A DNA stretch of 64,000 bases from positions 42,222,001-42,286,000 of the forward strand of contig CM060734.1 of assembly GCA_030704615.1 (NCBI GenBank), in the 5' to 3' direction. Numbering within the stretch: position 1 is the stretch's first letter; every line of letters begins with the position of its first letter. Below the pieces are notes generated by a model. That model did not search any database, had not been told where the DNA came from, and saw only the letters and a list, made by a program, of their open reading frames with translations. Source of the stretch: Takakia lepidozioides (Eukaryota; Plantae; Bryophyta). This document shows, piece by piece, positions 1,720 through 25,070 of the stretch. Position numbers and translations under genes: made by a program.

Positions 1720-3570
1720 TCATGTTTATCAGGTTCTTGGGAGGTCTTAGCAGGCCGTGTGTCAATCGGCGTCTGCTCAGCTGCACCGTGGTGGAGGCGT
1801 GGTGGTTCTCACAGAGCGATCCGACAGTACCTGACTACAGACACAAGCAGCACACACAAGAGGTCCTTTTGGATTGATGGTTGATCAAATCCTCCATGGG
1901 TCATGACACAAGGTCAAGGACAATGTGGTGAGGGCAGCTTCTTCTTTCATCTATTTCGACCTGTTTTTCCCTCTCATCAGACTCGGCCCTGAGATGCATA
2001 TTGAATTTTGTACTTTAGCTCATTGGGTGGATCTGTGGTGGTTAGGAGTGACTTTGACAAGCTACTGCTGATATAGCAATAGGAAAGTATCCAAAAACAG
2101 ATAACATAGGGTAGGAGAAGCACCTTCTTCAACACATTTCACCCTGTTTTCCCCTCTTATCAGAATCGGCCCTACATTTCCATGTTGAATTCTGCAAGTT
2201 AGTTGATTGAGTGAACCTTTGGTATTTTGAAGTGACTTTGACATGATATTGCCAATGTAAGACAGGAAAGTATCCAAAAACAGGTAAACAGAGACGAGGA
2301 GAAGCTGTGGGATGAATACTTTTCTGACCCCAGCCAATGGTGGGACAAACGAGGCAAAGGTGAATGCCTGCAGATTACCAGATGTCATTCTGAAGGCTGC
2401 ACACACAAGCTGCACACACAAGAGGTTCTTTAGGGTTGATGTTCGGTGAAATCCTCCATGGGTCATGACACAAGGTCAAGGACAATGTGGTGAGTGCATT
2501 TTCTTCTTCAACCTATTTCTGCCTGTTTTACCCTCTCATCAGACTCGGCCTTGAGATGCGTATTGAACTCTGTAAGTTAGTTCGTTGGGTGGATCCGTGG
2601 TGGTTAGGAGTGACTTTGACAAATTACTGCTGATGTGGCAGCAGGAAAGTATCCAAAAATAGATAACATAGACGAGGAGAAGACACCTTCTTCAATACAT
2701 TTCACCATGTTTTCCCCTCTTATCATAATCTGCCCTACATTTCCATGTTGAATTCTGCAAGTTAGCTGATTGAGTGAACCTTTGGTAGTTTAGAGTGATT
2801 TTGACATGATACTGCCAATGTGACACAGGAAAGTATCCAAAAACAGGTAAACAGAGATGAGGAGAAGTTGTGGGATGAATACTTTTCTGACCCCAGCCAA
2901 TGGTGGGACAACCAAGGCAAAAAGATGAATGCATGTTAGATTACCAGATGTCATTCTGAATGCTGCAGACTCGGCCTTGAGATGCATATTGAATTCTATA
3001 AGTTAGTTTGTTGGGTGGATCTGTGGTGGTTAGCAATGACTTTGACAAGTTACTGCCAATGTGGCAGCAGGAAAGTAACCAAAAACAGATAACATTTATG
3101 AGGAGAAGGCACCTTCTTTACACATTTCACCCTGTTTTTCCCTCTTATCAGAATTTGCCCTAAATTTCCATGTTGAATTCTGCATGTTAGCTGGTTGAGT
3201 GAACCTTTGGTAGTTTGGAGTGACTTTGACATGATACAACCTATGTGACAACACGAAAGTATCCAAATTAAACAGGTAACAGAGATGAGGAGAAGCTGTG
3301 GTATGAATACTTTTCTGACCCCGGTCAATGGTGGGACAACGTTGGCAAAAAGGTGAATGCCTGTCAGATTACCAGATGTCATTCTGAATGCTGCAGACAC
3401 AAGCTGCACACACAAGAGGTCTTTGTTTTACTCTCTCATCAGACTCAGCCTTGAGATGCATATTTGAATTGGGTGGATCTGTGGTGGTTAGGAGTGACTT
3501 TGACAAGTTACTGCCGATGTGACATCAGGAAAGTATCCAAAAATAGATAACATAGATGAGGAGAAGCTCG
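1720..3570 (+). pseudogene. Tandem array of captured OSB-type PDF-motif exon fragments
   Basis: PTVPDYRHKQHTQE..WIDG.SNPPWV near 1820-1900. EEKLWDEYFSDPSQWWD(K/N) at ~2296, ~2859 and ~3287. Unit spacing about 560 and 430 bp, with stops and frameshifts. Confidence 0.8.
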
Positions 3571-3718
3571 TTGGTCGATCTATGGTGTTTTGTAGTGATT
3601 TTTGATATATTACTGTAGGTAGGGTTGGGGTGTTTGCTGAAAGAACTTCACGCCATCAATATCAGCTGATTCAGCTGCTAGCAACAAGGCTGAGGATGTA
3701 TTCATGGTTTATACACAG

Positions 3719-3909
3719 GTGAAGAGAGCCCATACGCCCAAGTATCCTTGCCTCAGCCCCCTACTAGGAACAAGCTTCATGTGGATGACGACTTCCTGAC
3801 ATCCAAACTGTGGCCATATTTGGAAGGAGCTGCCAAGGCTGCAAGCATTCTAGAATATGTAAAATCTCAACACCTGTTTGGACAAGCACCAAAACAAACA
3901 TATGAAAAG
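3719..3909 (+). pseudogene. Captured exon-like fragment of an unidentified host gene
   Basis: Open frame ...KLHVDDDFLTSKLWPYLEGAAKAASILEYVKSQHLFGQAPKQTYEK ends in AAG|GTAAG donor. Confidence 0.45.
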
Positions 3910-4257
3910 GTAAGCGCCCCACCTTCTCACTGGCTAGATTGGGACGAGCCCTCATTTGCTTCTTGTAGATTTATTTCTGATTTTCAAAGTGCAAACCTTG
4001 ATGGCGAGTGTACGTGCTAATGTGTGTAGTCTGGAGCACATGGGTCATGAAAATATAGGAGAAGGGCCTAAGTGTAGGGCCTTCCGTCGTTGGTTTGTTC
4101 CATTGTTTCCACTGGCATAGTGGTTTTGTGGGCTGCTTGTGGAGGGGGCTGTCTGGTTTGTTTCCTTTCATGTTTTTAGCAGTCCCAGCTTGTCATCCCA
4201 TAAGCGCCATCATTACTGTTTTTGGGTTGCTTGTGGAGGGGCCCCAGCACCTCATAA

Positions 4258-4395
4258 GCATATGGGAGCCTAGCAGCCCTGGGAAGGGGCAAAGAGCTTC
4301 ATGGTGACATTATCAAAGCTGGAATTGTACCAGATGTCATTCTGAACATTCCCCTGGTGTACATCTACATCAAATGTGAGCCTAGCAGCCCTGGC
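4258..4395 (+). pseudogene. PLS-PPR fragment (L/S motif) inside the CACTA element
   Basis: Reads AYGSLAALGRGKELHGDIIKAGIVPDVILNIPLVYIYIKC, matching the PPR motifs at 22711-23217 and 47145-49475. Confidence 0.8.
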
Positions 4396-4619
4396 TAGAG
4401 AAGAACATGAAGAGGGCTTACAATTTCATTCGTCTGGGCGTAGACATTGCTGGCAATGAGAAGAAGGCAGGAAAGCAGTTCAGTGTTCCTAGCATGCATG
4501 CGGAGACGCCGTGTAGAAGTTAGGCTCAGACTTTTATCATGGCTGGATTTTGTTGATAGTGTTCCAGCACTTACTCTCTGGGATTCTATTTTATTTTGTG
4601 GAGCTTGAATCCCCAATGG

Positions 4620-5547
4620 TACTTCTTTCACTACAATAGTGGTATGTGTTCCACCTCTAGTCATGTTCCTATCACTTGCACGCCACTGTTAAGTGGTAGT
4701 AATTTGTATAGTGGTATAATTTAAAACTGTAAGAGTAGCCAAATACACACAATTGCCTCCATTACCACTCATGTAGTGGTATAAGTAATAACCTATATAT
4801 TATTGTATTAGTGGTATGAATTCCTCCAGTGGTATTCCTAATCACTTACACACCACTCTGTTAGTAATCATTCCAATCCATAGTTCCCACTCAGAGAGAC
4901 ACCATGGATGATTCAAATAGCTTACATACCACTATGTGGGTAATCATTCCAATGACCTACTGAGAGACGTCATCCACTCACATAACCACAGTTTGAGTGA
5001 TATTGTATATTTTGAGTTTTCATAGAATGATTCTGTGAGTCATTTCGCGATCACTCAACAAGTGGTTTCGGAAGTCATTGGTTTTTCACTCCATCCATTT
5101 CGTAGCACCGACACAGGACACGTGTCCATGCTGAGAGTGTCGCCACGTGTCAACATAATCTCCAATATCATCCACGGACCACTGATTTCCACGTGTCCAC
5201 TTGAAAACGGAAGTGGTTACTTTACCACTATGACACGTCAGTTTATCACTGTGACACGTCAGGAAGTGGTTGGTTTATCTCAGTGACACGTCATTGACAC
5301 GTCACATTGGTGAGTTTACACGTCACAGTGGTTAATTTACCACTGTGACATGTCAACGAACAGGTGGACCCGTACGTGAGTGGTTCGAACCACTGTCCTT
5401 AACCATGGATGCCACGTAATGTCTTTTACCACTCACTTGTCCTAATCCACTGGTTCTTCATCACTCTGGGGCCAGAGTGGTTTAGTGTCTTTTACCACTC
5501 AAAATGAGTGGTTAACAGAGTGGTTATTCCACGTTTTTCTTCTAGTG
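4620..5547. repeat. CACTA right subterminal repeat field
   Basis: Dense ACCACT/AGTGGT and GACACGTC repeats leading to the right TIR. Confidence 0.75.
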
Positions 5548-8500
5548 AATGTATCACTGCCCATACTACAGCTAGACGCTCCCCTTCATATGAACTATAC
5601 TTCGCCTCGGCATCATTGTTCGAGCGGCTAGCATATACCACTACAAACTCTCTTCCCTCATCATCCACCTGTGTGAGCACTGCCCCAATCCCCAACATAC
5701 TCCAATCCGTATGTAGCTGGATAGACCGCCCCCGAATAGGCGTAGAAGTCAATCGAGCCTTGAGTTCTTCAAAGGCTTCCTCCTGCTCCTCCTCCCACTG
5801 CCATTCCTGACCGACCTTGGTCAACTTGGTAAGAGCCTTTGCAATGCTGCTAAATCCCTTGACAAACCGTCGATAGTAGTTTGCCAACCCCATGAAAGGA
5901 CGAACTCTGCTAACATCGATGGGCTTGTAGGACACCGTTTCCTCCCGAAAGTCCAAAGTAAAGCCCATCGGGTATAACACAGCCCAACCAACAAGCACAT
6001 CATAAGACATCGCGTCCGTAACAATGGCTTTAGCTCTCATGACAGAGCCATCTGTAGGATGATCTGGCTGCAATTGAATGAAGAGCCCATGGCGTGTAAT
6101 CCCTTGTGCCTTCTCTGAACCGCCCAAAGATGTTTGAATTTAGAAAGGGCAAAGCTCCAAATCCGCCAATGTAAGGCCCAAGCCTACAATTGCTGCTCTC
6201 CCCAACATCAATGGTTGTGCTCCCGAGTCCAACAAGACCCATAGTGGCCTATACCTCATCTCGGTTGGGCCACCCAATTGAAACACTCCATCCTGATTGT
6301 CCACCAGGACTATCCTAGGAGTCACCATGCTGCGCTCAATGGCTGGTCTAGCTGGCAATTCCTGCAACCTTGCAGCTGCCGCCATGGCGCAGCTGTGGCT
6401 GACTTCACCCTCGATCTAAAGCATCCAAAGACTGCACCTTATCTGTTATCTTCGCAGATAGTGCCGATGCATCATCACTTTCACAGAGTCTAGCTGCTAG
6501 TCTGAACACAGCAGCTGACCAAATCCCCGACATTGCAATGGTCATTGTAGAAAATAATGGAGCTTGGCAAACCGTCGTAGCCGCCCCCAACAATGTATTG
6601 GATGCACCTTGCTTTGCAGCACCACCCACTGGTATTTCCCGAGCCACACCAACTCTCCCCAATGACACTCGTGGCTCTATCTCTGACACACTTGGGCGAG
6701 CGGGTGCCATTGATGGCGTAGGTGGCACTGTCTCAGCCAATGTAAAGGATTGTGGAAGCCTTGTCTGACGACTTGTTTCCCCCCTTTGTGGATCAAAATC
6801 CACATCCGCTCCTCTTGGCTCAGGAGTATGCGTTGCTGCTCGTGTGACAGCAGCAGCAGAGTCCAATATATGCAATGGCCCTGCAAGTGCGGCTCCACAC
6901 ATGAAGCCCATACCAATCTAATATTCCCTAGGCATAGGAGGTTGTGCAGGTGGGGCTTGAACCTCAAGCCTTGGAACTGGCGCAACATGAGTAGTGGCCA
7001 TGGCAGCAAAACGTTGCTCTAGCTGGGCAAGTCTATCCACCATGCCTTGGTCATGACCTTAACCTTGACCCTATGCTCCTTGGTTTTGGTTACGACCTCC
7101 ACCCCGACCTCTGTCTCCTCTATCTCTCTGGACTACATTGCCTCATCCTCGGCCACCATTGTTCCCTTGGAACTGGCCTGGCCGTAGCTCAAGATGCAAA
7201 CCATAACAATGGGCCTCCTCATGCCCATACTTTCCACAATGCCCACACTGTAGTTGTGTAGGTTGTGCCTGTGCCAGCCCTTTGCCTCTCTCCGGGCAAT
7301 CCTTCTTGACATGAGGTCCTCCCACAATCCCAACAAATCACACCCGACTGTTGTTGGACTAAGGAACGAAGGAAGAGACCTCTACATTTGAGATCCTCTC
7401 TGTCATTCCCTCGGCTTCACCTGGGCCCCCTTGTTGCCTTGAGCACGTTGGGATAGTGGTTGTTGTTGGCTAGGAGCCCACTTTGTTGTGTCTCCTTGCC
7501 AAACCCCACCATAACCATTCGCTCATCCACCAAATTGAGCTCTATCCGCTCTCCCAGCAAAAACACATTGTCGCACCGCATCCCGCACCTTTTTCCTCAG
7601 CTCCTTATCCAGGATCCCATACCAGAACTGGACTACCTGAGCTTCTGTAACCCCTTGGGTTACGTTTATCAAGCGCCTCATGCGAGAGTAAGCCTCCCTC
7701 AACTCTCAGTAGACCTTCGTTGGAACTCTTGCAAGCTCCGCAACTTCTCTGTCCTTATCCCTTGGTAGTTTCTCCTCAACTCCTCGAAGAACTCCACAAC
7801 TGGGTTAAAGGCAGGCACGGGTGCTGGTGCTGCAACAGGAGCTTGAGTGGATTTCCCAGCTCCTGTACCACTTGTCCCACTACTGATGCTTACAGTTGGA
7901 GATGTTTGTGTAGCTGCTGATGTCGCCACTACCCTTGTGCCTCTAGTGATGGAGACATAGTTATGTGACCAATACTCTCGCCACTCCTCAATCTCCACCG
8001 CATGTCCCCGCCTAACTTCATGGTAATCATCCATGGGCGGGCCTTCAAGGTGCTGGAATAGCCCCTTCCACGCCATAAAGGGCGTAAACAGTTGTGGATT
8101 GCGCATTTGCTGCAAATCACACCAACTGTCAAACTCTTGTATGAAGTCATCAAGCTCGATGGTGCCCACAGCTCCAGAGTACCTACGTGGCCCTTTGGTA
8201 GCTCCATACATCTCCTCCATCGTGTCCCACAACAATGGCACAGAAATGACTTGCACTCTTGGCGAGAATCCTCCTGACTCTGAATCTGAACCTTCCTCAG
8301 AAGACACTGAAGGTAAAGGTGGCCTAAACCGCACACCTCGTCTTGTATACCCACTAGTATCGCTGGTGCTCGTACTGACACTCCCCTCAGCAACTGGTGG
8401 AACCTCCGTGATGAAAACTCACAACCCAACCGGTTGTCAACTTGTCTCTAATCCCCACTTTCCACAAGGTAACCGGGTAGAGATTGTTGCGGCTACTGGT

Positions 8501-8741
8501 TCAAGCAGGAATAATAGGTTTCTAACGTAGACCTGTATCTGCACCTGCATCCACCGCAAGCACATGGTCTGCTGGTCATCAACCCAGCCTCACCATAGAA
8601 GAAACACTCGTGGTCTTGCTGGTCATCACTCCAGCCTCACCACCGACAGCATAAGATTGGCCGGTGATCAAATCCGGACCAACCTCCTATGAAAACAAGC
8701 GCCCACACAAAGCTAACATAGCGCACAGTCAAGCATGTAGG
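5548..8741 (-). mobile_element. Degenerate Ty3/gypsy internal region: gag, zinc knuckle, protease, RT 3' end/RNase H; RT core deleted
   Basis: Gag-like ORF 7699-8334; CGHCGKYGHEEAHC knuckle ~7200-7250; VLLDSGAQP protease ~6220; VRPFMGLANYYRRFVKGF and LHTDWS..GIGAVL RNase H in 5492-6127. The protease region jumps to the RT end near 5920. Confidence 0.9.
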
Positions 8742-9247
8742 TGTGGAGGGGATCCAAACACAAGAAAATCAAGACAACAACCCCCCCACACCAAAAACAC
8801 TCCACAGTGTCGCTCATGTAAGGACACTCCAGCCCAAACCCGGACTGACTCTTGCCTCCACCTACGGAAAGGTTTTGGCCTACAGCGATGGTGAAAGACT
8901 ATGGAGAAGAGAAACTAAGGCAATTCCTAACCCCAGAATGCTCTCATCCCACCACTCTCCCTTCTGTCTCTATCCACTCGCTTGTATGGTTGTGGCAAGT
9001 ATCCTTCAAATATTCCTCAATCAATTCTTCAAGAGCTCTTCAACATTGTCCACCAAAGCTCCTCGAAAGGTCCTCCAATACTCCATCCTCCCCTCTTTCT
9101 AGAAGCAATGTCCTCGTTGTTCGAATTTTCAAAAGCTTGAATTGCCAATTGAGCATTTGCAAGATTTTTCACCGATACTCACGTAGCTTCATGTAATGGA
9201 AATCTTTTCCATAAAACCAAGTATTCCAATATCTTATGTTGCCCTCA
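8742..9247 (-). repeat. Putative 5' LTR of the gypsy element
   Basis: Non-coding segment that starts TGAGGG and ends CCCTCCACA on minus, and cuts off the neighbouring chromodomain ORF. The second LTR is not in the window. Confidence 0.45.
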
Positions 9248-9625
9248 TTTGTATGTGTTTTTTTTCAGAACACGGTCGACCTCCCACTCTTCATTTCCGT
9301 CTATCAACTCTGGTAAAAGTTGTGGTTCTTGATTATCTTTTAATATTGATGGTTGAGGTTTGTAACGACGTAGTAGAGAACCGTGAAACACCGGGTGGAT
9401 CTTCATATGTAGTGGTAATTCCAGCTTGTATGCTACTGCTCCAATTCGTTTAATGATCGAAAAACGACCAATAAACCGTGCCCCTAGTTTTCGCAATCCA
9501 ATGATGTGTAAGTTGGTTGTAGACAACCACACTTGATCCCCAACTGCAAATTCCTTATCTCGTTGATATGCATTTGTATACTGCTTTTGGCGATTTTGGG
9601 CAACCATCAGCTTATCTTTAGCTTA
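9245..9625 (-). mobile_element. Chromovirus integrase C-terminus and truncated chromodomain
   Basis: AQNRQKQY..FAVGDQVWLST..KLGARFIGRFSIIKRIGAVAYKLELP..IHPVFH (GPY/F region), then EEWEVDRVL. Confidence 0.85.
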
Positions 9626-9754: not shown

Positions 9755-10715
9755 AATGTGTCTCTTTCGTTGACGCGTTGACCGACGGAAACTACTTTAG
9801 CGTAGAGGATGAATGCAGGGTTGACTGGACCAAAATGGACGTTTTAGATGACTGCAATTGATGGTGTCCTCAATTGAATTTGAATTAACTAATTAAAACC
9901 AACAAATATATATGTCATTGGATTCCTAGCTTCAATACGCACCCATAGCAACTCTCAAATCATGAATTTGATAAGAAATGACTCAGTTATGGACTTTTGA
10001 ACACCGTCATTGTGGACAGTTACCGCAGTGAATGAAATTATAATGGACTCAAGTTCTCCTATGTACCATTGGTGGGTTCCATTAAAATTTGGAGATAAGG
10101 TGGCCATTTTGGTCCACATCATAGATATGGATTTGAAGTGGCAAAATCATTTGTCATTTAACTCATATTATATATGTCAAAATTAGGCTTTTGAAAAGTC
10201 CATAGCTTTTGTTTTTTGGATTTTTGGTGTCATTTTCTTTCTAGAAGTATTCAATGGCTAGGTGGCATATTGATTTTTTTTTTGTAAACTATAATTTTTA
10301 GTTTTTCATAATTTCTCTAAATAATAGATTAAAATATTTAATACTTCTAGAAAGAAAGTATTAAATATGTTCAGTATACCATTATCTATTGCTAAGAAAA
10401 TATTTTGGATAGTATCCTCAGCTTTTTGTTTTTTTTTGTCATGGACTTTCATGGATCTGTCGTTTTTGGTCCACTCAACCCTACAACTGCCCTAGAGTAG
10501 ATATAGGGTGCCATAGTTCCATGTCAGCGTTGCCATGTCATTGTCACCACGTCATTGTCGCCATGTTTCGTAGCCACGTCATCGTCGCCATGTTTCGTCG
10601 TCAAATGTTTTGTTACTTGTCTGGACTGCCCTCCCGAAAAACGCCAATAGAACTTGTCGCGCCAAGTTTTTTGGAGCTGCCTGGATTGCCCGGTTCTTGA
10701 TCTTCTTGAATTGCA
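9755..10715 (+). repeat. Left arm of an inverted-repeat pair (partner at 25080-25300), interrupted by a MITE
   Basis: TTTAGCGTAGAG...GTCGTCAAA...GCCAATAGAA..TGTCGC..TGCCCGG.TCTTGATCTTCTTGA matches the reverse complement of 25080-25300 and partly 19841-19990. Confidence 0.7.
9808..10492. mobile_element. MITE-like element, copy 1 (685 bp, 5-bp TSD TAGAG)
   Basis: Imperfect TIRs GATGAATGCAGGGTTGACTGGACCAAAA / TTTTGGTCCACTCAACCCTACAACTGCCC. TAGAG at 9803-9807 and 10493-10497. Full-length homology to 20835-21581. Confidence 0.9.
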
Positions 10716-10784
10716 GGAAGGATTTCACACGCCGATCACAGATGAGACATTCGCAGATTATGAGTACAGCGCAGGAGCTCTCAC

Positions 10785-11467
10785 AGATGGTGGGACAACC
10801 ACAACCGCAAGATATGGCTTTTCCTAATGCACGTGATGTGAAGATGTTTGTCTATCCTGCAAATGTGGGCTTTTGGCTCCTGTTAGTACCATGATTTGGT
10901 ATTTAGCCTGATGTTTATAAAGTTCTCGGGAGAGTCAGCTTGGTCTTAGCAAGCCGTGTTTCAATCTCTGTTTGCTCAACTGCACCGTGGTGGTTCTCAC
11001 AAACCAAACCAACATTACCTAACTACAGACACAAGCAACACACACAAGAGTTCATTTTTGGGTTGATGGTCGGTCAAATCCTCCATGGATCATGACACAA
11101 AGTCAAGGACAATGTGGTGAGGGCACCTTCTTCTTCGACCTATTTCAGCATGTTTTGCACTCTCATCAGACTCGGCCCTGAGATGCATATTGAATTCTGT
11201 AAGTTAGCTTGTTGGATGCTACTATAATAATTAGGGTTGGGGTGTTTGCTGGAAGAACTTCACGCTTTCAATGTCAGCTGCTAGCAGCAAGGCTGGGGAT
11301 GTATTCATGATTTGTACACAGGCAGGGATAGTTGAAGGACCAGGGATAGAGGTCCAGATTCATCCAAGAGGGCCGGATTTCAAACACAAGATTACTTTTG
11401 ATTCCCTGTGGATCAATAGCTACAAGAAATCTGCGTGGGTAGATGGTCAACTGGAAACAACTTTTGG
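10785..11467 (+). pseudogene. Intron-containing two-PDF-motif gene fragment (OSB-like)
   Basis: HRWWDNHNRK, then a degenerate intron, then PTLPNYRHKQHTQE..WVDGRSNPPW. Further on GTCCAG|IHPRGPDFKHKITFDSLWINSYKKSAWVDGQLETTF G|GTATG. Confidence 0.8.
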
Positions 11468-12659: not shown

Positions 12660-13090
12660 ATGCACTTGAGAGCCAACTCACCATGCACCTCTTTGCCCTT
12701 TTCCAGGGCTGCCAGGCTTGCACAAGCATTGTGAACGCATACAAACCTGATGTGGTTGCGCTTCACCTCTTCCCCCATCATTTGTTCATAGGCCTCCAAG
12801 GCCTCCGTCCCGTGCCCCTGCTGTGCATATCCTGCAAGCATGGCATTCCATGACACCAAATCTCATTCAGTTCAATATTGTTCACTCAACCAGCTAACTT
12901 GCAAAGTTCAACATGGAAATTTAGGGCTGATTCTAGGGCTGCCAGGCTTGCAACAAGCATTGCGAACGCACACAAACGTGATGTGGTTGCACTTCACCTC
13001 TTCCCCCATCATTTGCTCATAGGCCTCCAAGGCCTCCGTCTCGTGCCCCTACTGTGCATATCCTGTAAGCATGGCGTTCCATGACACCAA
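12660..13090 (-). pseudogene. Duplicated PLS-PPR fragments interleaved with PDF-linker pieces
   Basis: VSWNAMLAGYAQQG..EALEAYEQM occurs twice as a ~230-bp duplication. Confidence 0.8.
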
Positions 13091-13209
13091 ATCTCATTCA
13101 GTTCAATATTGTTCACTCAACCAGCTAACTTGCAAAATTCAACATGGAAATTTAGAGCTGATTCTGATAAGAGGTAGAAACAGGGTGAAATGTGTTGAAG
13201 AAGACATTA

Positions 13210-14760
13210 GCAGTGCCGGATTTTATCAATTGTGCCGCTGCTGCTGCTGCTTCAAGTTGTAGCTATCCTTCCACAGGGAGTCATAGGTAATCTGGAGCTT
13301 GAAATCCGGACCTCTTGGATGAATCTGGACCCACACTCTATCATTGCTCCTTCAGCTATCCATGCCCTGCACAAATTATGCATACATCTTTGCCTTGCTG
13401 CTAGCAGCTGACAATGACAACCTAGATTTGTTCTGGGAAACACCCAATCACACTAGTTCTTATGTTGAATTGCGTTTGCTACTCTCTGACACCCCGTTCC
13501 GGACCCCCCTGCACCCAGACCAGTCCGAAGCCTCCTGACCACTCTGATCAGAGAAGCAAATAAACAAGCGGCAGCCTCCATCAGCCATACCAAAGTATAC
13601 ATCCAAAAATGGACTCCATCCAATGTACTGCACCATAAACTCTCCAATCATTTCTGGCTAACCAAAGCCACCACCGACACACAAATCCGACAAACACTCA
13701 AATTCCGATATGCCCAATACATGGGCCACCAGCGCAAACACATTTTCTGGCCACATCTGTTCCCATCCCCATACTACCCGTTATGTGCAACCACCCACCA
13801 AGCTCGTGACACTTGGCCACATCTCCTCAGCCAATGTACGCACCTACCTATACATGGCTTGCATATCACGCGTCATAACTAGGCAGTCTGGCACCTCCAC
13901 AAGCTCTTTCTAAAACATGCTGAAACCCGTTGGTTCTCGCTCATGAATGCAGGCACCTACCAGGGACGGCCACCCGACCACACAGTACCACGTGGCTACT
14001 ACCATGCAGATGTACCCGATCACCATGCTCATGCCCCGCTCGACTTTGCCCGGACATACTCCTCGTCCAAGGTCTACCTTTCAACACTTTACCACCTCAT
14101 CATCCCCACAACTCACCATCTATTTCATTGAATTCATTTGCCATGATTGTTATCCAAACGATTCAATCTTAGAAAAACGTCAAAAATATGCCTCGCTTAT
14201 CCTTGCACTTCGAAGGCGTGGCTGGAAAACCGGCCCATTAACTGTCATCACAGCCGACACTCGAGGTGACATTCATAACGCCAGTATCACGGACATACAC
14301 GATAACTTCCAAATTCCCATTGTTCCCATCCACAAATGTTTCAAAGAAATCCATCTCACGGCACTCCATTTACTCACAGCTATTATCACCAACAAACGCC
14401 AACTGGAATCCGGCACTTCAAACACACCTTAGGTCCCCCAGGATACCCCTGGGTACCCAGGGGTACGCGCCCCCTCTATTCTTAGCGGTCATCTGGTGTC
14501 CCCCTGGACATTTTTTTGTTATAGGGACCACCCCCGAAAGGGGACAGTAGCCGCAAGGCGAAGTGGCTCTTATACGCCGGCCTCGGCCGGAATCTTCTCT
14601 CTCTGCTACTCTCTGTAATCTTACAGGCATTCAACGTTTTGCCTCGGTTGTCCCTCCATTGACTGGGGTCACAAAAGTATCCATTCCACAGCTTCTCCTC
14701 ATCTCTGTTTTTGGATACTTTCCTGTTGTCACATTGGCAGTATCATGTCAAAGTCACTCC
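13210..14760 (-). pseudogene. PDF-motif exon-intron-exon fragment; the intron carries the RLE retrotransposon
   Basis: DEEKLWNGYFCDPSQWRDNRGK at ~14700-14640, then intron, then GTCCAG|IHPRGPDFKLQITYDSLW..AAAAAQLIKSG at ~13324-13213. Confidence 0.8.
13489..14603 (+). mobile_element. 5'-truncated non-LTR retrotransposon with restriction-like endonuclease (RLE; Dualen/RandI-like)
   Basis: LKFRYAQYMG..PLC..DTWPHLLSQC..ITRHN knuckle; RLCPDILL; FIEF.CHD; EKRQKYASL. TSD TGCTACTCTCTG at 13477-13488 and 14604-14615. Empty homologous site near 24205. (CT)n tail. Confidence 0.8.
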
Positions 14761-15650
14761 AAATGCAATCCTTCAAAAAGTTGCACGACCTCCCTATGAC
14801 AACCATGTTGGGCATATCCTGCAATCATCGCGTTCCACGACACCACATTTTGTTCAGCCATATTGTCAAATACTCCATTTGCATCCTCAATGCATCCACA
14901 TTTCACATACATGTTTACCAGGGCAGTGTCCAGAATGACATTTGGTACAATTCCAGCTTTGATGATGTCACCATGCACCTCTTTGTCCTTTTCCAGGGCT
15001 GCCAGGCTTGCACAAGCATTGCAAACGCACACAAACGTGATGTGGTTGCACTTCATCCCTTCCCCCATCATTTGCTCATAGGTCTCCATCCCGCGCCCCT
15101 GCTGTGCATATCTAGCAAGCATGGCGTTCCATGACACCATATTGTTGAACACTCCCTCCGCATCCTCAGATTGCAGCCAATCCCTCTTTTGAAATGAAAA
15201 AAGGTTCCGCAGCATCCACCATGTAGGTTCAGTATCACATCCTCAGTATCTTCCATCATCTCTGAATGGGGATAAGGGCCAACTGCAGGATAAGTATTTG
15301 CCAGCATTTTAGAGAAGTACCATTGCATGTCACATCCATTCAAAGGTTTATCAACACCAAAGCCGTGCTGTAGTTACATACAAGGCGGTATTGATGTTGG
15401 TACACCAAGGGGTGTGAGGATGGGCCTTTGCATCCTGGATGCTCCCGCATTTGACATACATGTCCACCAGGGTGTTGTTCAGAATGACATCTGCCAATTC
15501 CCGCTTTGATGATGTTACCATGGACCTCTTTGCCTTTTTTCATGGCTGCAAATGCAAACAAACCTGGTCCGGTTAGTTTTCAACCCTTCCCGCATATTTG
15601 CTCATAGGTCCCAAAAGCCTCCATCCCACACCCATGTTGCGCATAGAGAG
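14760..15650 (-). pseudogene. PLS-PPR pseudogene fragments
   Basis: P-L-S-P2 motifs in ORF 14754-15215 and frameshifted motifs at 15340-15650. Confidence 0.85.
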
Positions 15651-15709: not shown

Positions 15710-16500
15710 CCTAAACCAAACCAAACAGTACCCCAACCCTACTTATTACAGTAGATCCTATTCTGAATTGCATCTGCTTCTCTTTGTAGTCCAACAAGCA
15801 TTCACATTTTTGTTTCCATTGTCCCACCATCGACTGGGGTCGGAAAAGTGTTCATTCCAAAACTTCTCATCATCTCTATTATCTGTTTTTGGATATTTTC
15901 CTGTTGCCATATCGGCTGTAACTTGTCAAAGTCACTCCAACCACCACAGATCCACCCAACGAACTAACTTACATAATTCAATATGCAAATTCAGGGCCGA
16001 GTCTGATGAGAGGGCAAAACAGGTTGAAATAGGTCGAAGAAGAAGGTGCTCTCCCAACATTGTCCTTACCTTGTGTCATGATGCAGGGAGGATTTGACCA
16101 ACCATCAACCCAAAAGGACCTCTTGTGTGTGCTAGTTGTATCTGTAGTCAGGTAATGTCGGATTGGTCTGTGAGAACCACCACGGTGCAGCTAAGCAGGC
16201 AAAGATTCACGGCTTGGTAAGATCAAGCTGACTCTCACAAGAACCTTGTAAATATCAAGAAGAATACCAAATCATGGTACTAATAGGAGCCAAGAGCCTA
16301 AATTTGCAGGATGGACAAATTTCTTCACATTATACAGTCTCCAATGCCTCCATCCCACATCCATGCTGGGCAAACCCTGAGATCATCACTTTCCAAGAGA
16401 CTAAATTTTGCTCAGCGATACTGTCGAACACTCCCTTTGCATCAACTAAAATCCGGCCCTCTTGGATGAATCTGAACGTATTCATTCCAGAGCTTCTCCT
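15710..16500 (-). pseudogene. PDF-gene fragment, inverted paralog of 10840-11250, plus short PPR piece
   Basis: Reverse complement matches 10840-11250 (intron, PDYR..WVDG exon, linker). DEEKFWNEHFSDPSRWWDN at ~15870-15820. Confidence 0.75.
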
Positions 16501-18959
16501 CGTCTCTGTTATCTGTGAAAAAGGTTGTGCAGCATCCACCATGTAGGATCTCCCTCTGACATTGGTGTGTGAAACCTCTCCGCGCTCAAGCATCCGCCAT
16601 GAGAACCCACTTGAGATATTGCATAAACAATCGAAGAATTGAGCCATTTCCAAAACAACATTAAATTAAAAATGGTGTAGTGTGCTTGGTGCTGGTTTGC
16701 TGTTGTGTGGGATCCAGCCTGATGTTGGGAGTGCCATAGGTGTGTGCGTCGGTATTTGTTGTTTCCTTCGAGGCTCAGTGTCGGGATGTTATGGAGGGCT
16801 TGGGTTTCTCGATTTTTCTGGATGTTTTTTTTCCTTTCCTTATTTCGGGAGGGCGATCAGTGCAGCTACATGGGGTGGTTATTTGATGTGATGTCTGATG
16901 CTTGGGGAGGGACGGAGCGGTGTCTGCATACCGGGCAGAAGAGGGGGTTCAACCCTCACTTCTTGGGCATAGATAGGGGTACCCCTATGTTATACTTTTG
17001 CATTGTTCCTCATGTTTTCTGCATAGTATATATATCAAAAGAATCACTGTATGCGTGGGGATGACCCGCCCCTTTTTGTGCCAATTGAACGTAGTTCTCA
17101 GAATTCGTCACTAGTAGTGCGGAGCAACGCGAAGCCTTAGATGTATATTACTGTTTAATATTACATTAATCTCAAGAATTGTGGACTAGCCTAGTGGTAT
17201 GGAGTTGGTTGTGGTGTGTAGGTGGTCTCAAGCTCAAATTTGTATTGCGATATATACTTATTTTCAAAGTTTTTGAAAAATTCAAGACACCATGAGATTT
17301 GAACCCACGATGAGAGTCGTGACAATGGTGACCCTTACCACTACGCTACCCTCCTAATCATGCTAATCTTCCTGCTGTAGACTTATATCTAAGGTGTTGC
17401 TTACCCCCTCTTTATATGTATAATGTTGTACATGGGGGTTTAAAAATATCCCCTCCTGTGCACGCACGTGGCTGGTACAGGTTGGCTGGGGTGCACCCCC
17501 CAGGGTTACAACCAATAGATGGGATTTCTTCAATGACCGGTTCATCTAAGTTTTCAACCCACCTTTCTTTCTCTATCATTATAACGTCTTCATATTCATG
17601 ATCTGGTATCAATTCCCAAGTCGTTCCTATCAAAGTTGATCTAACAGTCTTTCATAAAATGCGGATACATATGCAAATAAACCACATGCAATGTTGCATG
17701 ATCCATCCACTATCTTTCACACCATTACCCATGATGCAAAGAAAACCTTTTGCTTAATCCAGATTTGACGTGTTGCCGCAATGGACAAAATAAATAGAGC
17801 ACAAAGTGATGCTAGTCAACCACACTGTGCCCTTGAAATCAAAGCTATGACTGATACTGGAGCTCAAGACCAGTTTTTTATAAAAACAATAAAGTTTGAG
17901 ATTCTCATGACATACCTTGTCATCGTAGCTTATTTAACGCATGCTTCATCTCAAAGGAAGTCACAGCGTTAGTACTCAAAAGAAAATAAACAAGGCGTAC
18001 TACACTGGGGTATCCATCCTCACTAGTGTATGGCAACTAGAAATAAAAATGAAGCAACATCATATGGAAAACGTAAAGTAGTACATAAGCAAAAACATAA
18101 GAGAGAACAAAGATGAGGACGGATATCGATCCTTCATCCATTCAAACTTCGGGGATTCCTGACTATTTACTCACCTCCCAGACGCACCATTTATATGACG
18201 AGCCCTGGACGCACGCGGCTAGGGTGACGACATACTAGCTAGGAGGGGTCATGGTGAGTCGCGGTGTTGGTTGGGCTCGAAGAACCGCCCACCTGGCTGC
18301 GGTTAGTGTAGGGGATCTGTGGCATGCCAGTGGCGGTTTCTGTGCGATAACTAATCCTATCGGCAAAGAAGAGCTTAAATCTCCCCTTCGCAAGGCAAGT
18401 TTGCATTCCTAGATCCTACGGTCTTCTTAAGGTTTTTAAAATTGAATTGCCTTCCAAGTCTGAGCCCAAGCTTCCAAGGCGCTTATAGCCGGGATTGTTA
18501 TCTATTCACAAAATGTCTCCTAGGCCGGGGGAAGCGAGGTAAATACCTCCGCTCAATGCCCCTCCAATGCTGCAGATATCTGTCTTTAAACTATCCTAGG
18601 GGAAGGGGCCCAGATCCTCCCTCTAAACTTGCCTTCAATTTGAGGGAGTCTGGAACGATGCGACCGTCAACGGCTCGTTTTGGCCTATTAATCGGGCATA
18701 ACTAACATATTGTTAAACCAGAGCTCCCAATGCGCTTATAGCCGGGATAATTTTATCCCTTCACAAAACGTCTCCTGAGCTACCGGGGATCAAGGGTCAA
18801 TACCCCCGTCCGTCGCCCCTCATCAGCCAGGTATTTGCCTTCAAATAACCTCGGGAGGATGGGGCCAAAAGCCTCCCTTTAAACTTGTCAATGTTGTAAT
18901 GCACTCCATCCCCCTGATACCGGGACCTATACCACGACGACACCAAGAGAGGAGGGTTT

Positions 18960-19821
18960 AACCCTAATTTGGAACCGCAGCTTTCATTTATGAATACATC
19001 ATCTCCAGGGAGATTGTAGACCGAGGATCCCACTTTATTAATGATGTCAACGAAGACAACCAGCATGTAGCCCAGTGGTAAGGGCACATACCCTCTCACG
19101 AGTGGTTATGGGTTCAATCCACTTGTTGGAAGTCATTACGGTGTCCACCTTCCCACCGGAAGGCAGTAGCCCTATGGGATCAATTGACACCATAAGTTAC
19201 GCTTGCTTCGGCAACGCGTCCACCTTTGATGTCAACGAAGAAATTATGATGGCATCTTTTTCCATCAAGCATCGCAAGGCTATTCCTTATCATCCGCAAA
19301 CTAGTGGGCATGTGAGCGTGCCAATCAAACATCATGCGACATCTTATCAAAGACGATTCAAGAGCACAAACGGGATTGGAACACGAAATTGATTTCGGCC
19401 TTATGGGCATTTCGCACGACTCATAAGGTAACGACTCAACACACCCCTTTTCACTGGTATACGGGGTGGAATCCATTATGCGTGGAGAGGTTAGCAACAT
19501 CAGAGTCCTTGAAGGAATATGTTGGAAGGATTGGACGAGCATCGACAGTCAGCCGCTCAGCACATAGAAGCAGTGCAGCGAAGAATGAAGGCTCGGTTTG
19601 ACTTGAAGCGCAAAAAGAGGATTTTTGACCCTTGTGATTTGGTGTTGCTCTTGGACAGCCGAAATGAGGAATTCAAACCTGAGTTTGATTCATATTGGAT
19701 GGGGTCGTATGTAGTCAAGACTGTATTTGACAACGGCTCATTGCAGTTGGAGACATTGAGGGGAGTGGACTTCTCCAACTTGCAGGTAATTGGCATCCGG
19801 TGCAAACACTGTTACATGTAA
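18960..19821 (+). mobile_element. Ty3/gypsy integrase fragment (non-chromovirus type)
   Basis: GSHFINDV..IKHRKAIPYHPQTSG; LWAFRTTHKVTTQHTPF; MKARFD..FDPCDLVLL..WMGSYVV. Upstream ~255-bp tandem duplication at ~18470-18900. Confidence 0.85.
19055..19226 (+). mobile_element. tRNA-derived SINE, copy 1
   Basis: A box TAGCCCAGTGGTAA, B box GGTTCAATCC. TSD TGATGTCAACGAAGA (19042-19056, 19227-19241) interrupts the integrase frame. Confidence 0.85.
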
Positions 19822-20689
19822 GGTACGCACTTGTCTGCACTCATTCTAGCGACGACCAAAGGTCGGAAGCTAGCTTAGCGTAGAGCAGGAATAGGGTGCC
19901 ATAGTGCCTCGTCATCGTCGCCACGTTTCGTAGCCACGTCATCAACGTCAATTTTTTTGCACCTTGCCCGGATTGCCCGAAAATAACCGGGAGATGTGCG
20001 CGGGGAAGGGAGGATGATGCGCCCACGTGTTGCGTATCGGGAATGTGCAGGATTTAATCCGAATGCTATATCCGTGGCATAAGACGAATTCTGAGAACTA
20101 CGTTCAATTTTTCACAAAAAATGGTGGGTCATCCCCATGGTGTTACATGCAAAAGATCCCATGTTTTGTTTATTTCTAGAAGAAAAATGGAGGATCTGCA
20201 TTTCAATGTTCATTTTCACAAAAAAAAGGTATGTCATCCCCATGGTGTTACATACATACATCCTATATTTCATTGTTTTTTGCAAGAAAAATTATAAACA
20301 TTTCATTGTCAGCTCTCCCAGTGGTTCAGAGTCTTCCCTTGTTTGATGAGAGGTAGGGCCTACTCGAGGATGCTCTTGAAAAAAGAGTGAAAATTATTGT
20401 CATATGCAAAAGTTAGTGGGATCCATCTGAGCCTGGTAAGCAGTGAAGGGTTAACAGGTTAACTAGATACGTGCTTTTATATTTTACCAATATAATCCAT
20501 TTTTTTCACTTATTTTGTTTTATCTCTCCACAAAATATTTTATGCTAAATACATTCCGAGTTATATTAAAAACTCTTACCCAACAGTCAATAGCTCAGGC
20601 AGGGACTGTGAGCAGTAGAATCCCCAGTGTTCAGCCACCCTCCGTTAATGATTTTTGTTGAATCTGTCAAACCCTCATCTGATCCTCCA

Positions 20690-23600
20690 GCCCTCTCTGG
20701 CATGATGGTCAAGACTCTCAGGAAATGGCACATACCCTACCTCCTTCATCTGCCCAACCAATCTTCTCAGCTCAGCATGGATTTTCTTTAATTCTGGGAT
20801 GCAACTTGTCATCATGACAAACGTGTGCATCCTGGGTGAATGCAGGGTTGATTGGACCAAAATGGACGTTAGCAACACAGTTTTAGATGGCTGCAATTGA
20901 TGGTGTCATCAATTGAAATTGAATTAACTCATTAAAACCAGTAAATATATATGTCATTGGATTCCTAGCTTCAATACGCACCCATTGCAACTCTCCAATC
21001 ATGAATCCGATAAGAAATGACTCCGCTATGGACTTTTGAACACCGTCATTGTGGACTGTTACCGCAATGAATGGAATTACAATGGACTCAAGTTCTCCTA
21101 TGTGCCATTGGTGAATTCCATTGAAATTTGGACATAAGGTGGCCATTTTGGTCCACATCATAGGTATGTATTTGAAGTAGCAAAATCATTTGTCATTTGA
21201 CTCATATGGACTAATATATGTAAAACAAATAGGCGTTTTTTGAAAAGTCCATAGCTCATCTTGTTTTTTGGATTTTGGGTGTCATTTTTTTTTCTAGAAG
21301 TATAAAAACCTATAATCTTCAATGGCTAGGTGTCATATTGAAATGTTTTTGTAAACTCTAATTTTTAGTTTTGCATAATTTCTCTAAATAATAGACTAAA
21401 ATATTTAATGAATTATATCTTTAATATTTGGGGTAGGACTCTTTACTAAATATGTTCAGTATACCGTTATCTATCATTAAAAAAATATTTTGGGATAGTA
21501 TCATCAACTTTGTTTTTTTGGTCATGGACTTTTATGGAGCAGGATCTGCCGTTTTTGGTCCACTCAACCCTGCAACTGCCCCCCTGTTGTCAACCTCAAT
21601 GCAGCAGCGACCTGGCTCTTTTCTAACCCCTCTGATCTTCATCATTCTTATCACCTTTGCAGTATCATCCCACCTGCCAGCTGCAGCATAGATGTTTGAT
21701 AGCAACACATATTGCATCATGTTCATCCCACTTGAGGATAGATGTTGCCGCACGTTCAGCCATCTCCACATTGCCATGGATTCTGCAAGCACCAAGCAAG
21801 GCCTTCCACACCACAAACATCTGGATTGATTGACATCTTATTAATCAGATCCACTGCCTCATCCAGTTGTCCAAGAAGGTCCACCATACAGCCAAAGTGC
21901 TTTACTGTCGGAGTGACACCATGATCTTGATTTCCTTCAATTAGTAGGCGAGTGTGGCTGCATACAGAGAGAACACTTATAAAGGTGGGACTGTCTGGCT
22001 TCAAGCCATTCTTTTGCATTCCTTCAAATAGTTGCAAGACCTCCCTATGACAACCATGCTGGGCATATCCTGCGATCATCGTATTCCTCGACACCACATT
22101 TCGATCAGCGATATTGTCGACACTCCCTTCGCATTCTCAATGCACCCACATTTGGCATACATGTCCACCAAGGCAGTGTACAATTCCAGCTTTGACGATG
22201 TCAACATTGACCTCTTTGCCCTTTTCCAGGGCTGCCAGGCTTGCACAGACATTGCAAACAGAAACAAACGTGATGTGGTCGGGGTTCTCCCCTTCCCCCA
22301 TCATTTGCTATAGGTCTCCAAAGCCTCCATCCCGCGCCCTTGCTGTGCATACCCTGCAATCATCGCACTCCACGACACCAAATCTCATTCAGCCATACTG
22401 TCAAACACTCCCTCCACATCCTCGATGCACCCACATTTTGCATACATGTTCACGAGGGTATTGTTGAGAATCACATCTGGCACAATTCCTGCTTTTGCGA
22501 TGCAACCATGCACCTCTTTGCCCTTTTCCAGGGCTGCCAGGCTTGCAAACGCACAGACGTGATGTGGTCGGGCTTCACCCCTTCCACCATCATTTGCTCA
22601 TAGGTCTGCAAAGCCTCTATCCTGCACCCCTGCAAGCATACCCTGCAAGCATTGCGTTCCACAACACCACATTTCATTCAGCCATATTGTTGAACACTGC
22701 CTTCACATCCTCAATGCTCCCACATTTGGCATACATGTCCCACGAGGGCATTGTTCAGAATGACATCGGGTACAATTCCAGCTCTAACAATGTCGCCATG
22801 GGCCTCTTTGCCCTTTTCCAGAGCTGCCAGGCTTGCACATGCATTGGAAACACACACAAACGTGATGTGGTTGGGCTTCACCCCTTCCCCCATCATTTGC
22901 TCATAGGTCTCTAAAGCCTCCACCCCACGTCCCTGCTGTGCATACCCAGCAAGCATCGCGCTCCACGACATCACATCTCGTTCAGCCATATTGTTGAAAA
23001 CTGCCTTTGCATCCTTAATACACCCACATTTGGCATACATGTCCACCAAGGCAGTGTTCAGAATGACATCTAGTACAATTCCAGCTTTGCCGATGTCATC
23101 GTGGATCTCTTTCTCCTTTTCCAGGGCTCCCAGGCTTGCACACGCATTCCAAACACAAATGAATGTGATGTGGTTGGGCTTCACCCTTTCGTGCATCATT
23201 TGCTCATAGGTCTCCAAAGCATTTGTACCACACCCATGCTTGGTAGATCCTCATCTCTGTTATCTGTTTTTTGATACTTTCGTGCTGCCACATCGGCAGT
23301 TACTTGTCAAAGTCATTCCAAACCACCACAGATCCACCCAATGAGCTAACTTATATAATTCAGGGCTGAGTCTGATGAGAGGGCAAAACAGGCTGAAATA
23401 GGTCGACGAAGAAGGTGCCATCACCACATTGTCCTTGACAATTCAGTATGCGTCTTAGGGCCGAGTCTGATGAGAGGGCAAAACAGGCTGAAATAGGTCG
23501 AAGACGAAGGTGCCCTCGCCACATTGGCCTTGACCTTGTGGCACGACCCATGGAGGATTTGACCACCCATGCTTGGTAAATCCTGCCAACATTATATTCC

Positions 23601-25070
23601 ACGCGATCAAAGATGGTTGAGGCATTGTGTTGAACACTTGGTGAGCATCCATGATGCTCCCGCACTTAACATACATGTTGACAAGGGTGTTGAGTAGAAA
23701 AACATTTGGCTAAATCCACTTTTGTGTGAGTGTGCACCTGCTTTCTAGCTTCAAAACCTTACATCTTGATGCACTTATACAAGAGACAGACATACGTATC
23801 TGAATCTACTGAAATGCCTCCTTGGTTTAAAGTCTGTAGAGCCTCTTTCAGTCTTGGCAAAGCATCTTCACGTGCCCAGAAGTCACGCCAGAAGAGGCAT
23901 TGTGGACTCCCTCTCTTGATCCTCTTCCAGAAGCTGTGGTCATGGTTGAGGTGCCTGATTTTATCAACTGTGCCGCTGCAGCTGCTGCCTTTAGTTGACC
24001 ATCTACGCATGCAGGTTTCTTATAGCTATTGATCCACAGGGAATCATACGTATTCTTGTGCTTGAAATCTTGCCCTCTTGGATGAATTTGGACCCACACT
24101 CTATCCTGCATTCATCTTTGCCCTTGCTGCTAGCAGCTGACAATGATAGCCTAGATTTGTTCTAGGAAACACCTAATCATATTAGTTCCTATGCTGAATT
24201 GCGTCTGCTACTCTCTGATCTAACAGACATTTAACTTTTTGCCTCGGTTGTCCCACCATTGACTGGGGTCAGAATTCAACATGGAAATTTAGGGCCGATC
24301 ATGAATCCATCCTCAGCCTTGTTGCTAGCAGCTGACACTGACGGCGTGAAATTCTTCCAGCAAACACCCCAACCCTACTTATTACAGTAGCACCCGACGA
24401 GCTAACTTATAGTATTCGATATGCATCACAGGGCCGAGTCTGATGAGAGGGCAAAACAGGCTGAAATAGGTCGAAGAAGCAGGTGCCCTCACCACATTGT
24501 CCTTGACCTTGTGGCATGACCCATGGAGGATTTGGCCGACCATCAACCCAAAAGGACCTCTTATGTGTGCTGCTTGTGTCTGTAGTCAGATAATGTCGGA
24601 TTGATCTGTGAGAACCACCACGGTGCAGCTGAGCAGGCAAAGATTGAAACACGGTCTGCTAAGACCAAGCTATCTCGTCCTAGGGGTCATGCTGATCAGC
24701 CCAAAATCAATGGCCATCTTCTCACTGTGGTGGCAAAGAGAAATTTCCTTTCATCCTCCCCCACATCATGCAATACAATGCGCGTGTGAGGCACATACCC
24801 CGCCTCCTGCATCTGCGCAGACAATCTTCTCAGCTCAGCATGGATTTCCTTAATTCTGGGATGCAAATTGTCATCTAAAACGAAGGTGTGCACCCTGTTG
24901 CCAACCTCAATGCAGCAGTGACCTGGCTCCTTTCTAACCCCTCTGACCTTGATCATTCTTCTCACCTTTGCAATATCATTTGCTTGATCCTTCATCTGCC
25001 AAGACAATATCTTCAGCAAGTCTTCAGCTCAGCATGGATTCCTCAATTCATTGAGAATTTGCAGCTTGCA
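20690..25070 (-). pseudogene. Scrambled PDF-PLS-PPR-E-DYW pseudogene, the most complete copy
   Basis: On minus: DYW piece with PG box and CHHSEK (25020-24680), PDF pieces (24660-24240), PDF C-half running into the first PPR motifs (24090-23570), PLS triplets (23220-22100), P2-L2-S2-E1-E2 (22100-21580), E+ up to GYVP (20834-20725). Confidence 0.85.
20835..21581. mobile_element. MITE-like element, copy 2 (747 bp, 5-bp TSD TCCTG/CCCTG)
   Basis: Same TIRs as copy 1. It splits the PG-box sequence IEVDNR|MHTF; the uninterrupted paralog near 24890 has a single CCCTG. Confidence 0.9.

Follow-up and report, generated by a model that had tools for sequence, protein, structure and literature searches.

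Few proteins of plant organelles have been studied as much as the PPR-DYW editing factors, which are being engineered as RNA editors. The polarity of their pentatricopeptide repeat (PPR) tract on RNA is established, with the N-terminal end of the tract facing the 5' end of the RNA. The PDF module has, to our knowledge, its only known home in the OSB proteins. The PDF of OSB proteins is reported to be sufficient for the binding of single-stranded DNA (ssDNA), and OSB1/2 to prefer ssDNA to double-stranded DNA or RNA (PMC6963530, PMC4166229, citing Zaegel 2006). The extra domains listed for Physcomitrium PPR proteins in a catalogue of 2022 are RRM, LAGLIDADG, SMR, NYN, CBS and SAP, and PDF is not among them (PMC9459714). 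In a stretch of 64,000 nucleotides from contig CM060734.1 of the moss Takakia lepidozioides (positions 42,222,001 to 42,286,000, below referred to as the window), broken copies of a gene were found in which OSB-type PDF modules are joined to a PLS-type PPR tract with E motifs and pieces of a DYW domain.

The PDF-PLS-PPR-E-DYW proteins constitute a real gene family which is widespread in seed-free land plants (liverwort, moss, lycophyte and fern). The reality of the family and the identity of the fragments are held with high confidence. With the intact 776-aa PPR open reading frame (ORF) of the window as a query, the best matches were PPR proteins of Diphasiastrum complanatum with about 53% identity, and WWDNR and/or PDFKHK was present near the N-terminus in 30 of the 120 best matches. 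A query containing only the PDF region of one of these matches resulted in 177 long proteins. About 100 of these were PPR proteins of Diphasiastrum; five Sphagnum species contributed several and Ceratodon purpureus one, and true OSB-type proteins, including one named OSB3, were also matched. Two PDF-PPR proteins were detected in the liverwort Calypogeia fissa and one, with two PDFs, in the fern Adiantum capillus-veneris. The fusion class suspected in the preliminary description is borne out by these proteins, more than 100 of which belong to the lycophyte Diphasiastrum and the others to moss, liverwort and fern.

The HxE..CxxCH centre together with a DYW-type C-terminus was determined in 50 of the 128 fetched PDF-bearing proteins. 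P0124 and P0136, with three and two PDFs, respectively, contained PPR, E and complete DYW_deaminase domains (Pfam, 5e-45 and 8e-45), P0136 having additionally E+. The source gene had been predicted to encode at least two PDFs followed by PLS, E and DYW, and this plan is matched by both intact proteins. P0070 was an uninterrupted ORF of 945 aa on a 7-kb metagenome contig, in which a whole PDF is followed by PPRs. The lack of a spliced form with both modules in any species, named beforehand as the result that would speak against the fusion, was not observed, as spliced and single-ORF forms exist. The search for a Physcomitrium orthologue gave only three Ceratodon proteins, the query having too few shared words. 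The fusion was met only in seed-free plants in these searches, with a limited sample of seed plants.

No paper joining PDF or OSB with PPR or DYW was found in a full-text literature search, and PPR is not mentioned in a 2026 survey of OSB evolution. The fusion is likely to be truly undescribed, the assessment being kept at that level because most subscription journals were outside the literature coverage. PDF-PPR proteins are already present, unremarked, in public proteomes. No Pfam family was detected in the PDF regions; since Pfam has no PDF model, the architecture is probably invisible in domain databases.

In the intact relatives, the gene begins with a presumed transit-peptide exon and continues with one to four OSB-type PDFs; a phase-0 intron interrupts each PDF shortly downstream of WWDNR (by a few residues) and before xxxxxPDFKHK. 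The final C-half exon proceeds directly into the PLS-class PPR tract, E1/E2 and the DYW cytidine deaminase. Liverwort, moss, fern and the window agree to within one residue in where this intron cuts the PDF. The determined splits were ..WWDNRNRK/GNPRAPDFKHK in Ceratodon, ..WWDHRLEK/GSLRYPDFKHK in Calypogeia, A/NPNAPDF and K/KNPRAPDF in the two PDFs of Adiantum, and ..WWDNRGKK/IHPRGQDFKHK in the window. The last PDF C-half and the PPR tract were on one exon in Calypogeia, Adiantum and the window, and the C-half exon of Calypogeia extended at least 400 residues into the PPR tract without an intron. The OSB3-like gene of Orobanche hederae (L002) has five PDFs in a single exon; every PPR-linked PDF that was examined is intron-split.

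The PPR-linked PDFs and the OSB-type PDFs are homologous modules by profile comparison (hhalign 99.9%, E 1.6e-31, 54 columns), the OSB-type profile being built from short non-PPR proteins, including an SSB-domain protein and the protein named OSB3. The residues invariant in OSB PDFs, i.e. the Trp/Phe aromatics, D, R, K and the PDFKHK core, were all kept in the PPR-linked ones. An exhaustive search with the PDF profile resulted in 1,355 cluster representatives. The median relative position of the PDF was 0.58 (C-terminal half) in the non-PPR class versus 0.10 (N-terminus) in the PPR class. Among paralogues the PDF was conserved like the PPR tract, the pairwise identities being 0.62 and 0.59, respectively. 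The number of PDFs had no convincing correlation with the length of the PPR tract. In the AlphaFold model of 57 residues (pLDDT 93.6), the PDF consisted of a helix, two short strands and a helix.

The two described systems differ from the family in different parts. The OSB proteins share with it the same roughly 50-residue module, tandem arrays and probably the organellar location. However, they have a central SSB-like OB fold with the PDFs on its C-terminal side, whereas the PDFs of the PDF-PPR proteins are N-terminal. Neither SSB nor any other Pfam domain was detected in the N-terminal parts of P0045, P0080, P0095 and P0091; P0124 and P0136 contained PPR, E and DYW domains only, and the true OSB-type protein P0233 showed Pfam SSB. 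Due to this absence of the SSB-like domain, a PDF-PPR protein is not an OSB protein. With the PLS-E-DYW factors Physcomitrium PPR56 and PPR65 and Arabidopsis OTP86, the intact members have in common the PLS tract, E1/E2, the PG box, HxE..CxxCH and the DYW-type C-terminus, and they differ from these by one to four PDFs, which follow the transit peptide and precede the first PPR. The window keeps PPR, E and partial DYW pieces of this plan, its own copies being pseudogenes. Among the other PDF proteins, little besides PDF modules was present in P0221 (14 copies in 1160 aa, Kingdonia uniflora) and in P0121 (8 copies in 705 aa), and neither had a Pfam domain. In P0198 (Coptis) and P0244 (Striga), PDFs occurred with a kinesin motor or ICR-like names, possibly as a result of merged gene models.

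The PDF pieces of the window were determined with a hidden Markov model (HMM) of 57 positions, which was trained only on proteins of other species and run over all six frames. Six N-halves (HMM positions 3-27, domain E 1.6e-9 to 2e-5) and three C-halves (HMM positions 27/31-56, E 8e-9 to 6e-3) were matched, three of the N-halves and one of the C-halves on the plus strand (Table 1). These halves correspond to the PDF motif of the OSB family (about 50 aa with conserved P-D-F), and their boundary, HMM position 27/28, is the intron position of the intact genes. In addition, three or four tails of an unsplit third PDF (FWVDGRxNPPWV) were present. In 3/3 copies of it, PDYRHK and WVDGR were in different frames; the two pieces are one PDF with a shared frameshift. 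The assignment of PDYRHK.. to a decayed DYW C-terminus (..RFHHF..DYW) was ruled out, because intact PDFs end with LWIDGxxNPPWV as their normal tail and the PDF HMM matches the tails of the window.

The identities of the PPR and E pieces were backed by Pfam. Tandem PLS-type PPRs were detected with Pfam PPR/PPR_2 on the ORFs 22711-23217, 14754-15215 and 47145-49475, and also by tblastn with Diphasiastrum PLS proteins, and E1/E2 followed the PPRs with a Pfam E_motif match of 3e-12 at 21532-21816. The DYW pieces were partial only (KEPGHCCIEV and HSEKMAI): CxxCH and a terminal DYW were found in no frame anywhere in the window by motif scan, and a complete deaminase with PG box, HxE, CxxCH and terminal DYW was not found there. 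The recurrence of PDF halves with PPR, E and DYW pieces in three co-oriented clusters had been read from the sequence alone, and both the motifs and the orientations agreed with the independent PDF HMM and Pfam. Beyond these three clusters, a fourth partial copy at 10.8-11.5 kb (plus strand) and a fifth PPR gene at 46.7-49.5 kb (minus strand) were determined. The nucleotide identity among the copies was 75-89%, the non-coding parts included, therefore they are duplicated genomic segments and not convergent motifs. Transposons abound in the window, which is plant nuclear DNA, and in its part at 1.7-25 kb decayed copies of a single nuclear multi-copy gene family have very probably accumulated. 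All the PDF-bearing copies in it are dead. As had been claimed for them, only broken ones are present, with frameshifts, lost splice sites, a 734-bp insert, truncated DYW and capture by a CACTA element. No uninterrupted coding sequence was found among them, clusters 1 and 2 being fragments only.

No other copy in the window is as complete as cluster 3 (25.0-20.7 kb, minus strand). The preliminary description had seen in it one open frame from the PDF C-half through a linker into the first PPR motif. The frame is real as far as ..HVKMLCQD, the first residues of PPR motif 1 (ORF 24111-23848, 87 aa), and its linker aligns to the N-terminus of the 776-aa ORF; a stop follows, however, and the rest of motif 1 is in another frame (ORF 24010-23759). 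Likewise, the PDF-linker adjacency at about 13250 in cluster 2 was confirmed, but it contains a frameshift and stops after LIKSGT. The reading of cluster 3 requires at least six frame changes, with Pfam PPR on the 168-aa ORF 22711-23217, and both splice sites of its PDF intron are lost. The E2/DYW fragment at 24690-25019 ended abruptly at about 24690 and gave a weak Pfam E+ match (24696-25019).

Contigs of four runs of the same organism were placed on 23300-25100 at 80% likeness. Two probable RNA runs contained the joint 24087/24235, in 3 and 4 contigs, respectively, and none of the 22,484 DNA-run contigs had it. The exon-to-intron depth was about 70x in run X7 compared to 4.6x in DNA. The joint and the exon depth in the probable RNA runs, relative to the DNA run, indicate that paralogues of the cluster 3 locus are expressed and spliced as predicted, the copy in the window being unspliceable. 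The probable RNA contigs overlapped across the C-half, the linker and the first PPR, and proceeded with canonical DYW sequence where the window diverges at 24690. The 22,484 DNA contigs on 1.8 kb at 80% likeness mean that the PDF-PPR family and its debris are present in very many copies in the genome.

As regards the architecture, the preliminary interpretation is supported; its functional ideas, a nucleoid tether and a deaminase on ssDNA, are putative. The family members are probably organellar C-to-U RNA editing factors, because the PG box, the HxE..CxxCH centre and the DYW-type C-terminus are canonical. In such a factor, the PDF may be a small module that holds single-stranded nucleic acid independently of its sequence. 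It is placed where the PPR tract starts, on the 5' side of the RNA footprint. We give somewhat better than even chances to accessory single-strand binding by the PDF, owing to the kept invariant residues, the arrays of one to four modules, a conservation equal to that of the PPR tract and the reported ssDNA binding of OSB. As all the invariant OSB residues are kept, the PDF most likely retains the preference of OSB for ssDNA. It would then hold the editing factor at nucleoids or transcription bubbles, where nascent RNA would be edited. Such an ssDNA tether is slightly favoured, with a hold on RNA upstream of the editing site as a close second.

Several points weigh against this reading. Since the window contains no intact PDF-bearing copy, nothing in it can be called a working gene. 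The RNA label of the two runs is a guess, and their contigs, placed at 80% likeness, represent paralogues and not this locus. In Foldseek searches against the PDB, nothing below E 4 was found for the PDF model, and the best Z of the wide VIA-align search was 2.4; the model thus has no match among solved structures that could point to a binding mode. A single origin of the PPR-linked PDFs was not obtained from the PDF tree (251 rows, 59 columns), in which the labels were clustered, with 9 label changes (8 with fragments set aside) versus 36.8 in shuffles. Finally, in a PDF that is part of an RNA-binding protein, the ligand may have changed, either to RNA or to a protein partner.

The first of these shifts, by which the PDF binds the target RNA just 5' of the PPR footprint, raising the affinity or keeping the site unfolded, and so acts as a helper in plants without MORF-type helpers, is possible, though less likely than not. 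It is in agreement with the N-terminal position of the module, which places it towards the 5' end of the RNA that the PPR tract binds, with the occurrence of the fusion in seed-free plants only, and with the view that moss editing factors act with few partners (PMC9459714). However, OSB1/2 were reported to prefer ssDNA over RNA (PMC4166229), and the absence from seed plants is based on the limited sample. The second shift is unlikely. The PDF would then no longer bind nucleic acid; it would mediate protein-protein contact, for example dimerisation or docking to another protein of the editosome or nucleoid, or take part in import or sorting. The PPR-linked signature EFFSDPSQWWD and NPPWV, compared to the OSB type DLVxNPxKWWD and SPDWVL, the constant position of the PDF directly behind the presumed transit peptide, and the reported tetramer of AtOSB2 (PMC6963530) agree with such a role. 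In contrast, all the residues invariant in OSB PDFs are kept, and the arrangement of 2-4 modules in tandem suggests avid binding to a polymer.

The favoured ssDNA tether also has a stronger form, in which PDF-PPR-DYW proteins couple RNA editing to ssDNA, namely the non-template strand, R-loops or replication intermediates of organellar nucleoids. We regard it as improbable. If true, editing in seed-free plants would be co-transcriptional and independent of helpers, and in the extreme version the DYW deaminase would act on ssDNA itself and contribute C-to-T change in organellar genomes.

The PDF-PPR adjacency could also be a chimera made in this genome by a transposon or rearrangement, with the PDF pieces coming from an ordinary OSB locus. 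In agreement with this alternative, cluster 1 is the gene-fragment cargo of a non-autonomous CACTA transposon with perfect hallmarks. The element is 5,345 bp long (5.3 kb) and has inverted CACTA/G termini. Its 29-nt CACTAG.. terminal inverted repeats agree at 28/29 positions and occur in the window in just two copies, with 0 expected by chance. The 3-bp target duplication AAT is present on both flanks, and subterminal GTGGTT..ACCAC repeats were found. No transposase-like ORF was evident in the ORF list of the element, whose ORFs were not run against Pfam. Its cargo consists of one PDF remnant, which is 80-85% nucleotide-identical to the copies at 10.9, 16.2 and 24.6 kb, an N-half exon in three tandem copies, and one piece of a PPR. 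The tandem unit is about 562 bp long (1835-2404 and 2397-2970 at 89% identity). Roughly 130-nt inverted arms bracket cluster 3, and the fragments are scrambled: the N-half occurs three times in tandem, and upstream of one PDF a DYW fragment is attached.

Despite these observations, the chimera is very improbable for the family. Intact proteins with the same module order occur in four plant lineages, and both modules are in a single ORF in P0070. The PDF intron position is common, within one residue, to liverwort, moss, fern and this genome, and the SSB-like domain, the hallmark of OSB, is absent from the PDF-PPR proteins. Thus, the transposon-made chimera considered in the preliminary description is contradicted for the family; at least cluster 1 of the window is transposon cargo. 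The element resembles the Pack-type transposons (Pack-CACTA and Pack-MULE) in its CACTAG.. termini, subterminal repeats, 3-bp duplication and load of PDF exons with a PPR piece, but such transposons account for the moving of one broken copy and not for the origin of the fusion. Pack-type hallmarks were not found for clusters 2 and 3. The arms of cluster 3 may mark the ends of another fragment-carrying transposon; a third copy of the arm repeat was located at 9786-9821 and 10493-10709, ahead of the 10.8-kb fragment, and target duplications of 3, 8, 9 or 10 bp around the arms were not found.

That the fusion proteins in databases are gene-model artefacts, in which a small PDF gene was joined to the PPR gene next to it, as the many automatic Diphasiastrum models and their inconsistency (some, such as P0001, begin right after the PDF) might suggest, is scarcely credible in view of the single ORF on the metagenome contig, the Calypogeia C-half exon that reads on into the PPR tract, the same in-frame run in the window, and the probable RNA contigs spanning C-half, linker and first PPR.

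The fifth PPR gene contains the 776-aa ORF with the linker of the family. No PDF motif or exon was recognisable within 1.3 kb upstream of it by motif scan, alignment and PDF HMM. A PDF remnant at that place, suggested by a tblastn alignment reaching 49580, was ruled out, as the nucleotide alignment showed the linker only; the linker alignment scored 27 compared to the shuffle maximum of 25. The region 46737-49475 represents a recent pseudogene or, alternatively, a PPR protein whose deaminase is being lost.

The coordinates of the determined features are presented in Table 1. Cluster 2 consists of scattered PPR and PDF pieces. A second copy of the 734-bp insert of cluster 3 was located at 9807-10492 (83% identical), where it splits a copy of the arm repeat, and a target duplication of the insert at 20841-21574 was looked for and not found. 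The 10.8-kb fragment (10836-11425) forms inverted duplicates with parts of cluster 2 (16330-15953 and 13445-13257), the arms being 80-97% complementary in a 5.5-kb palindrome-like arrangement. Remains of a Ty3/gypsy element at 5.5-9.6 kb include an RNase H-like domain (5492-6127), a Tf2-type integrase SH3 domain (9245-9607) and a gag-like ORF; the CACTA element adjoins or sits inside the RNase H region. A fragment of a MULE transposase was found at 45863-46288.

Table 1. Features of the PDF-PPR copies and associated elements in the window (iE, independent E-value of the PDF HMM match; HMM, positions in that model).
Feature	Position	Strand	Evidence and remarks
Non-autonomous CACTA transposon (Pack-CACTA), encloses cluster 1	203-5547		terminal inverted repeats 203-231 / 5519-5547; AAT target duplication
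Unsplit PDF remnant (WWFSQSDPTVPDYRHKQHTQEVL)	1794-1877	+	weak HMM match 1809-1859
PDF N-half exon, tandem copy 1 of 3	2293-2355	+	HMM 3-23, iE 3e-8
PDF N-half exon, tandem copy 2	2856-2930	+	HMM 3-27, iE 1.6e-9
PDF N-half exon, tandem copy 3	3284-3358	+	HMM 3-27, iE 3.9e-8
Single PPR-motif fragment	4258-4377	+	tblastn with Diphasiastrum PPR proteins, 40 aa, 50-55% identity
Unsplit PDF remnant, frameshifted (PNYRHK in one frame, FWVDGRSNPPWI in another)	10997-11097	+	HMM 38-55, iE 8e-3; tail match 11044-11097
PDF C-half exon (IHPRGPDFKHKITFDSLWIN) and linker start, then stops	11364-11450	+	HMM 28-56, iE 8e-9; translation
PPR fragment of cluster 2	12674-13102	-	tblastn, 167 aa, about 41% identity
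PDF C-half, then AAAAAAQLIKSGT linker, frameshifted	13230-13330	-	HMM 27-47, iE 6e-3; match 13321-13259
PDF N-half exon	14638-14703	-	HMM 3-24, iE 2.5e-6
153-aa PPR ORF fragment	14754-15215	-	Pfam PPR 5e-17, PPR_2 4.5e-16
PDF N-half exon	15806-15871	-	HMM 4-25, iE 2e-5
Unsplit PDF remnant of cluster 2	16077-16264	-	81-87% nucleotide identity to 1713-2120 and 24391-24671; weak HMM tail match 16127-16077 (0.2)
Left arm of roughly 130-nt inverted repeat bracketing cluster 3	19843-19979		partner 25174-25296
DYW-domain start remnant, 36 aa	20726-20833	-	tblastn; no HxE or CxxCH after it (motif scan)
734-bp insert at E2/DYW junction, 22-nt terminal inverted repeats	20841-21574		inverted repeat 95% complementary
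E1/E2 motifs	21583-21817	-	Pfam E_motif 3e-12; tblastn
PLS-type PPR tract, spread over three frames	21816-23850	-	collinear tblastn chain, frames -2, -3, -2, -1, -3
Second-PDF C-half, linker and first residues of PPR motif 1, one open frame	23848-24087	-	HMM 31-56, iE 2e-6; match 24072-23995
Phase-0 intron splitting the PDF, 147 nt	24088-24234	-	ends TT..AA, not GT..AG
N-half exon of second PDF (SDPSQWWDNRGKK), 5' part lost	24229-24279	-	HMM 11-27, iE 1e-6
First (unsplit) PDF of cluster 3, internal stop and frameshift	24500-24620	-	HMM 38-54, iE 1e-2; tail match 24565-24515
E2/DYW N-terminal fragment, degenerate PG box KEPGHCCIEV, then HSEKMAIDFGLIS in another frame	24690-25019	-	tblastn to P0033 residues 1102-1199
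E2/DYW pieces behind the 776-aa ORF, other frames	46737-47052	-	tblastn, frames -1 and -3
Intact 776-aa PLS-PPR ORF, ends inside E1	47145-49475	-	Pfam; carries family linker

The window itself contributes pseudogenes and an example of the capture of gene fragments by a CACTA element. The family to which they belong offers a second context for learning what the PDF fold does. As a small, confidently folding (pLDDT 94), putative single-strand-binding module, the PDF could be added to synthetic PPR editors. In the plants themselves, its fusion with the PPR tract might explain how mosses, lycophytes and ferns manage with editing factors that lack the helper proteins known from seed plants.

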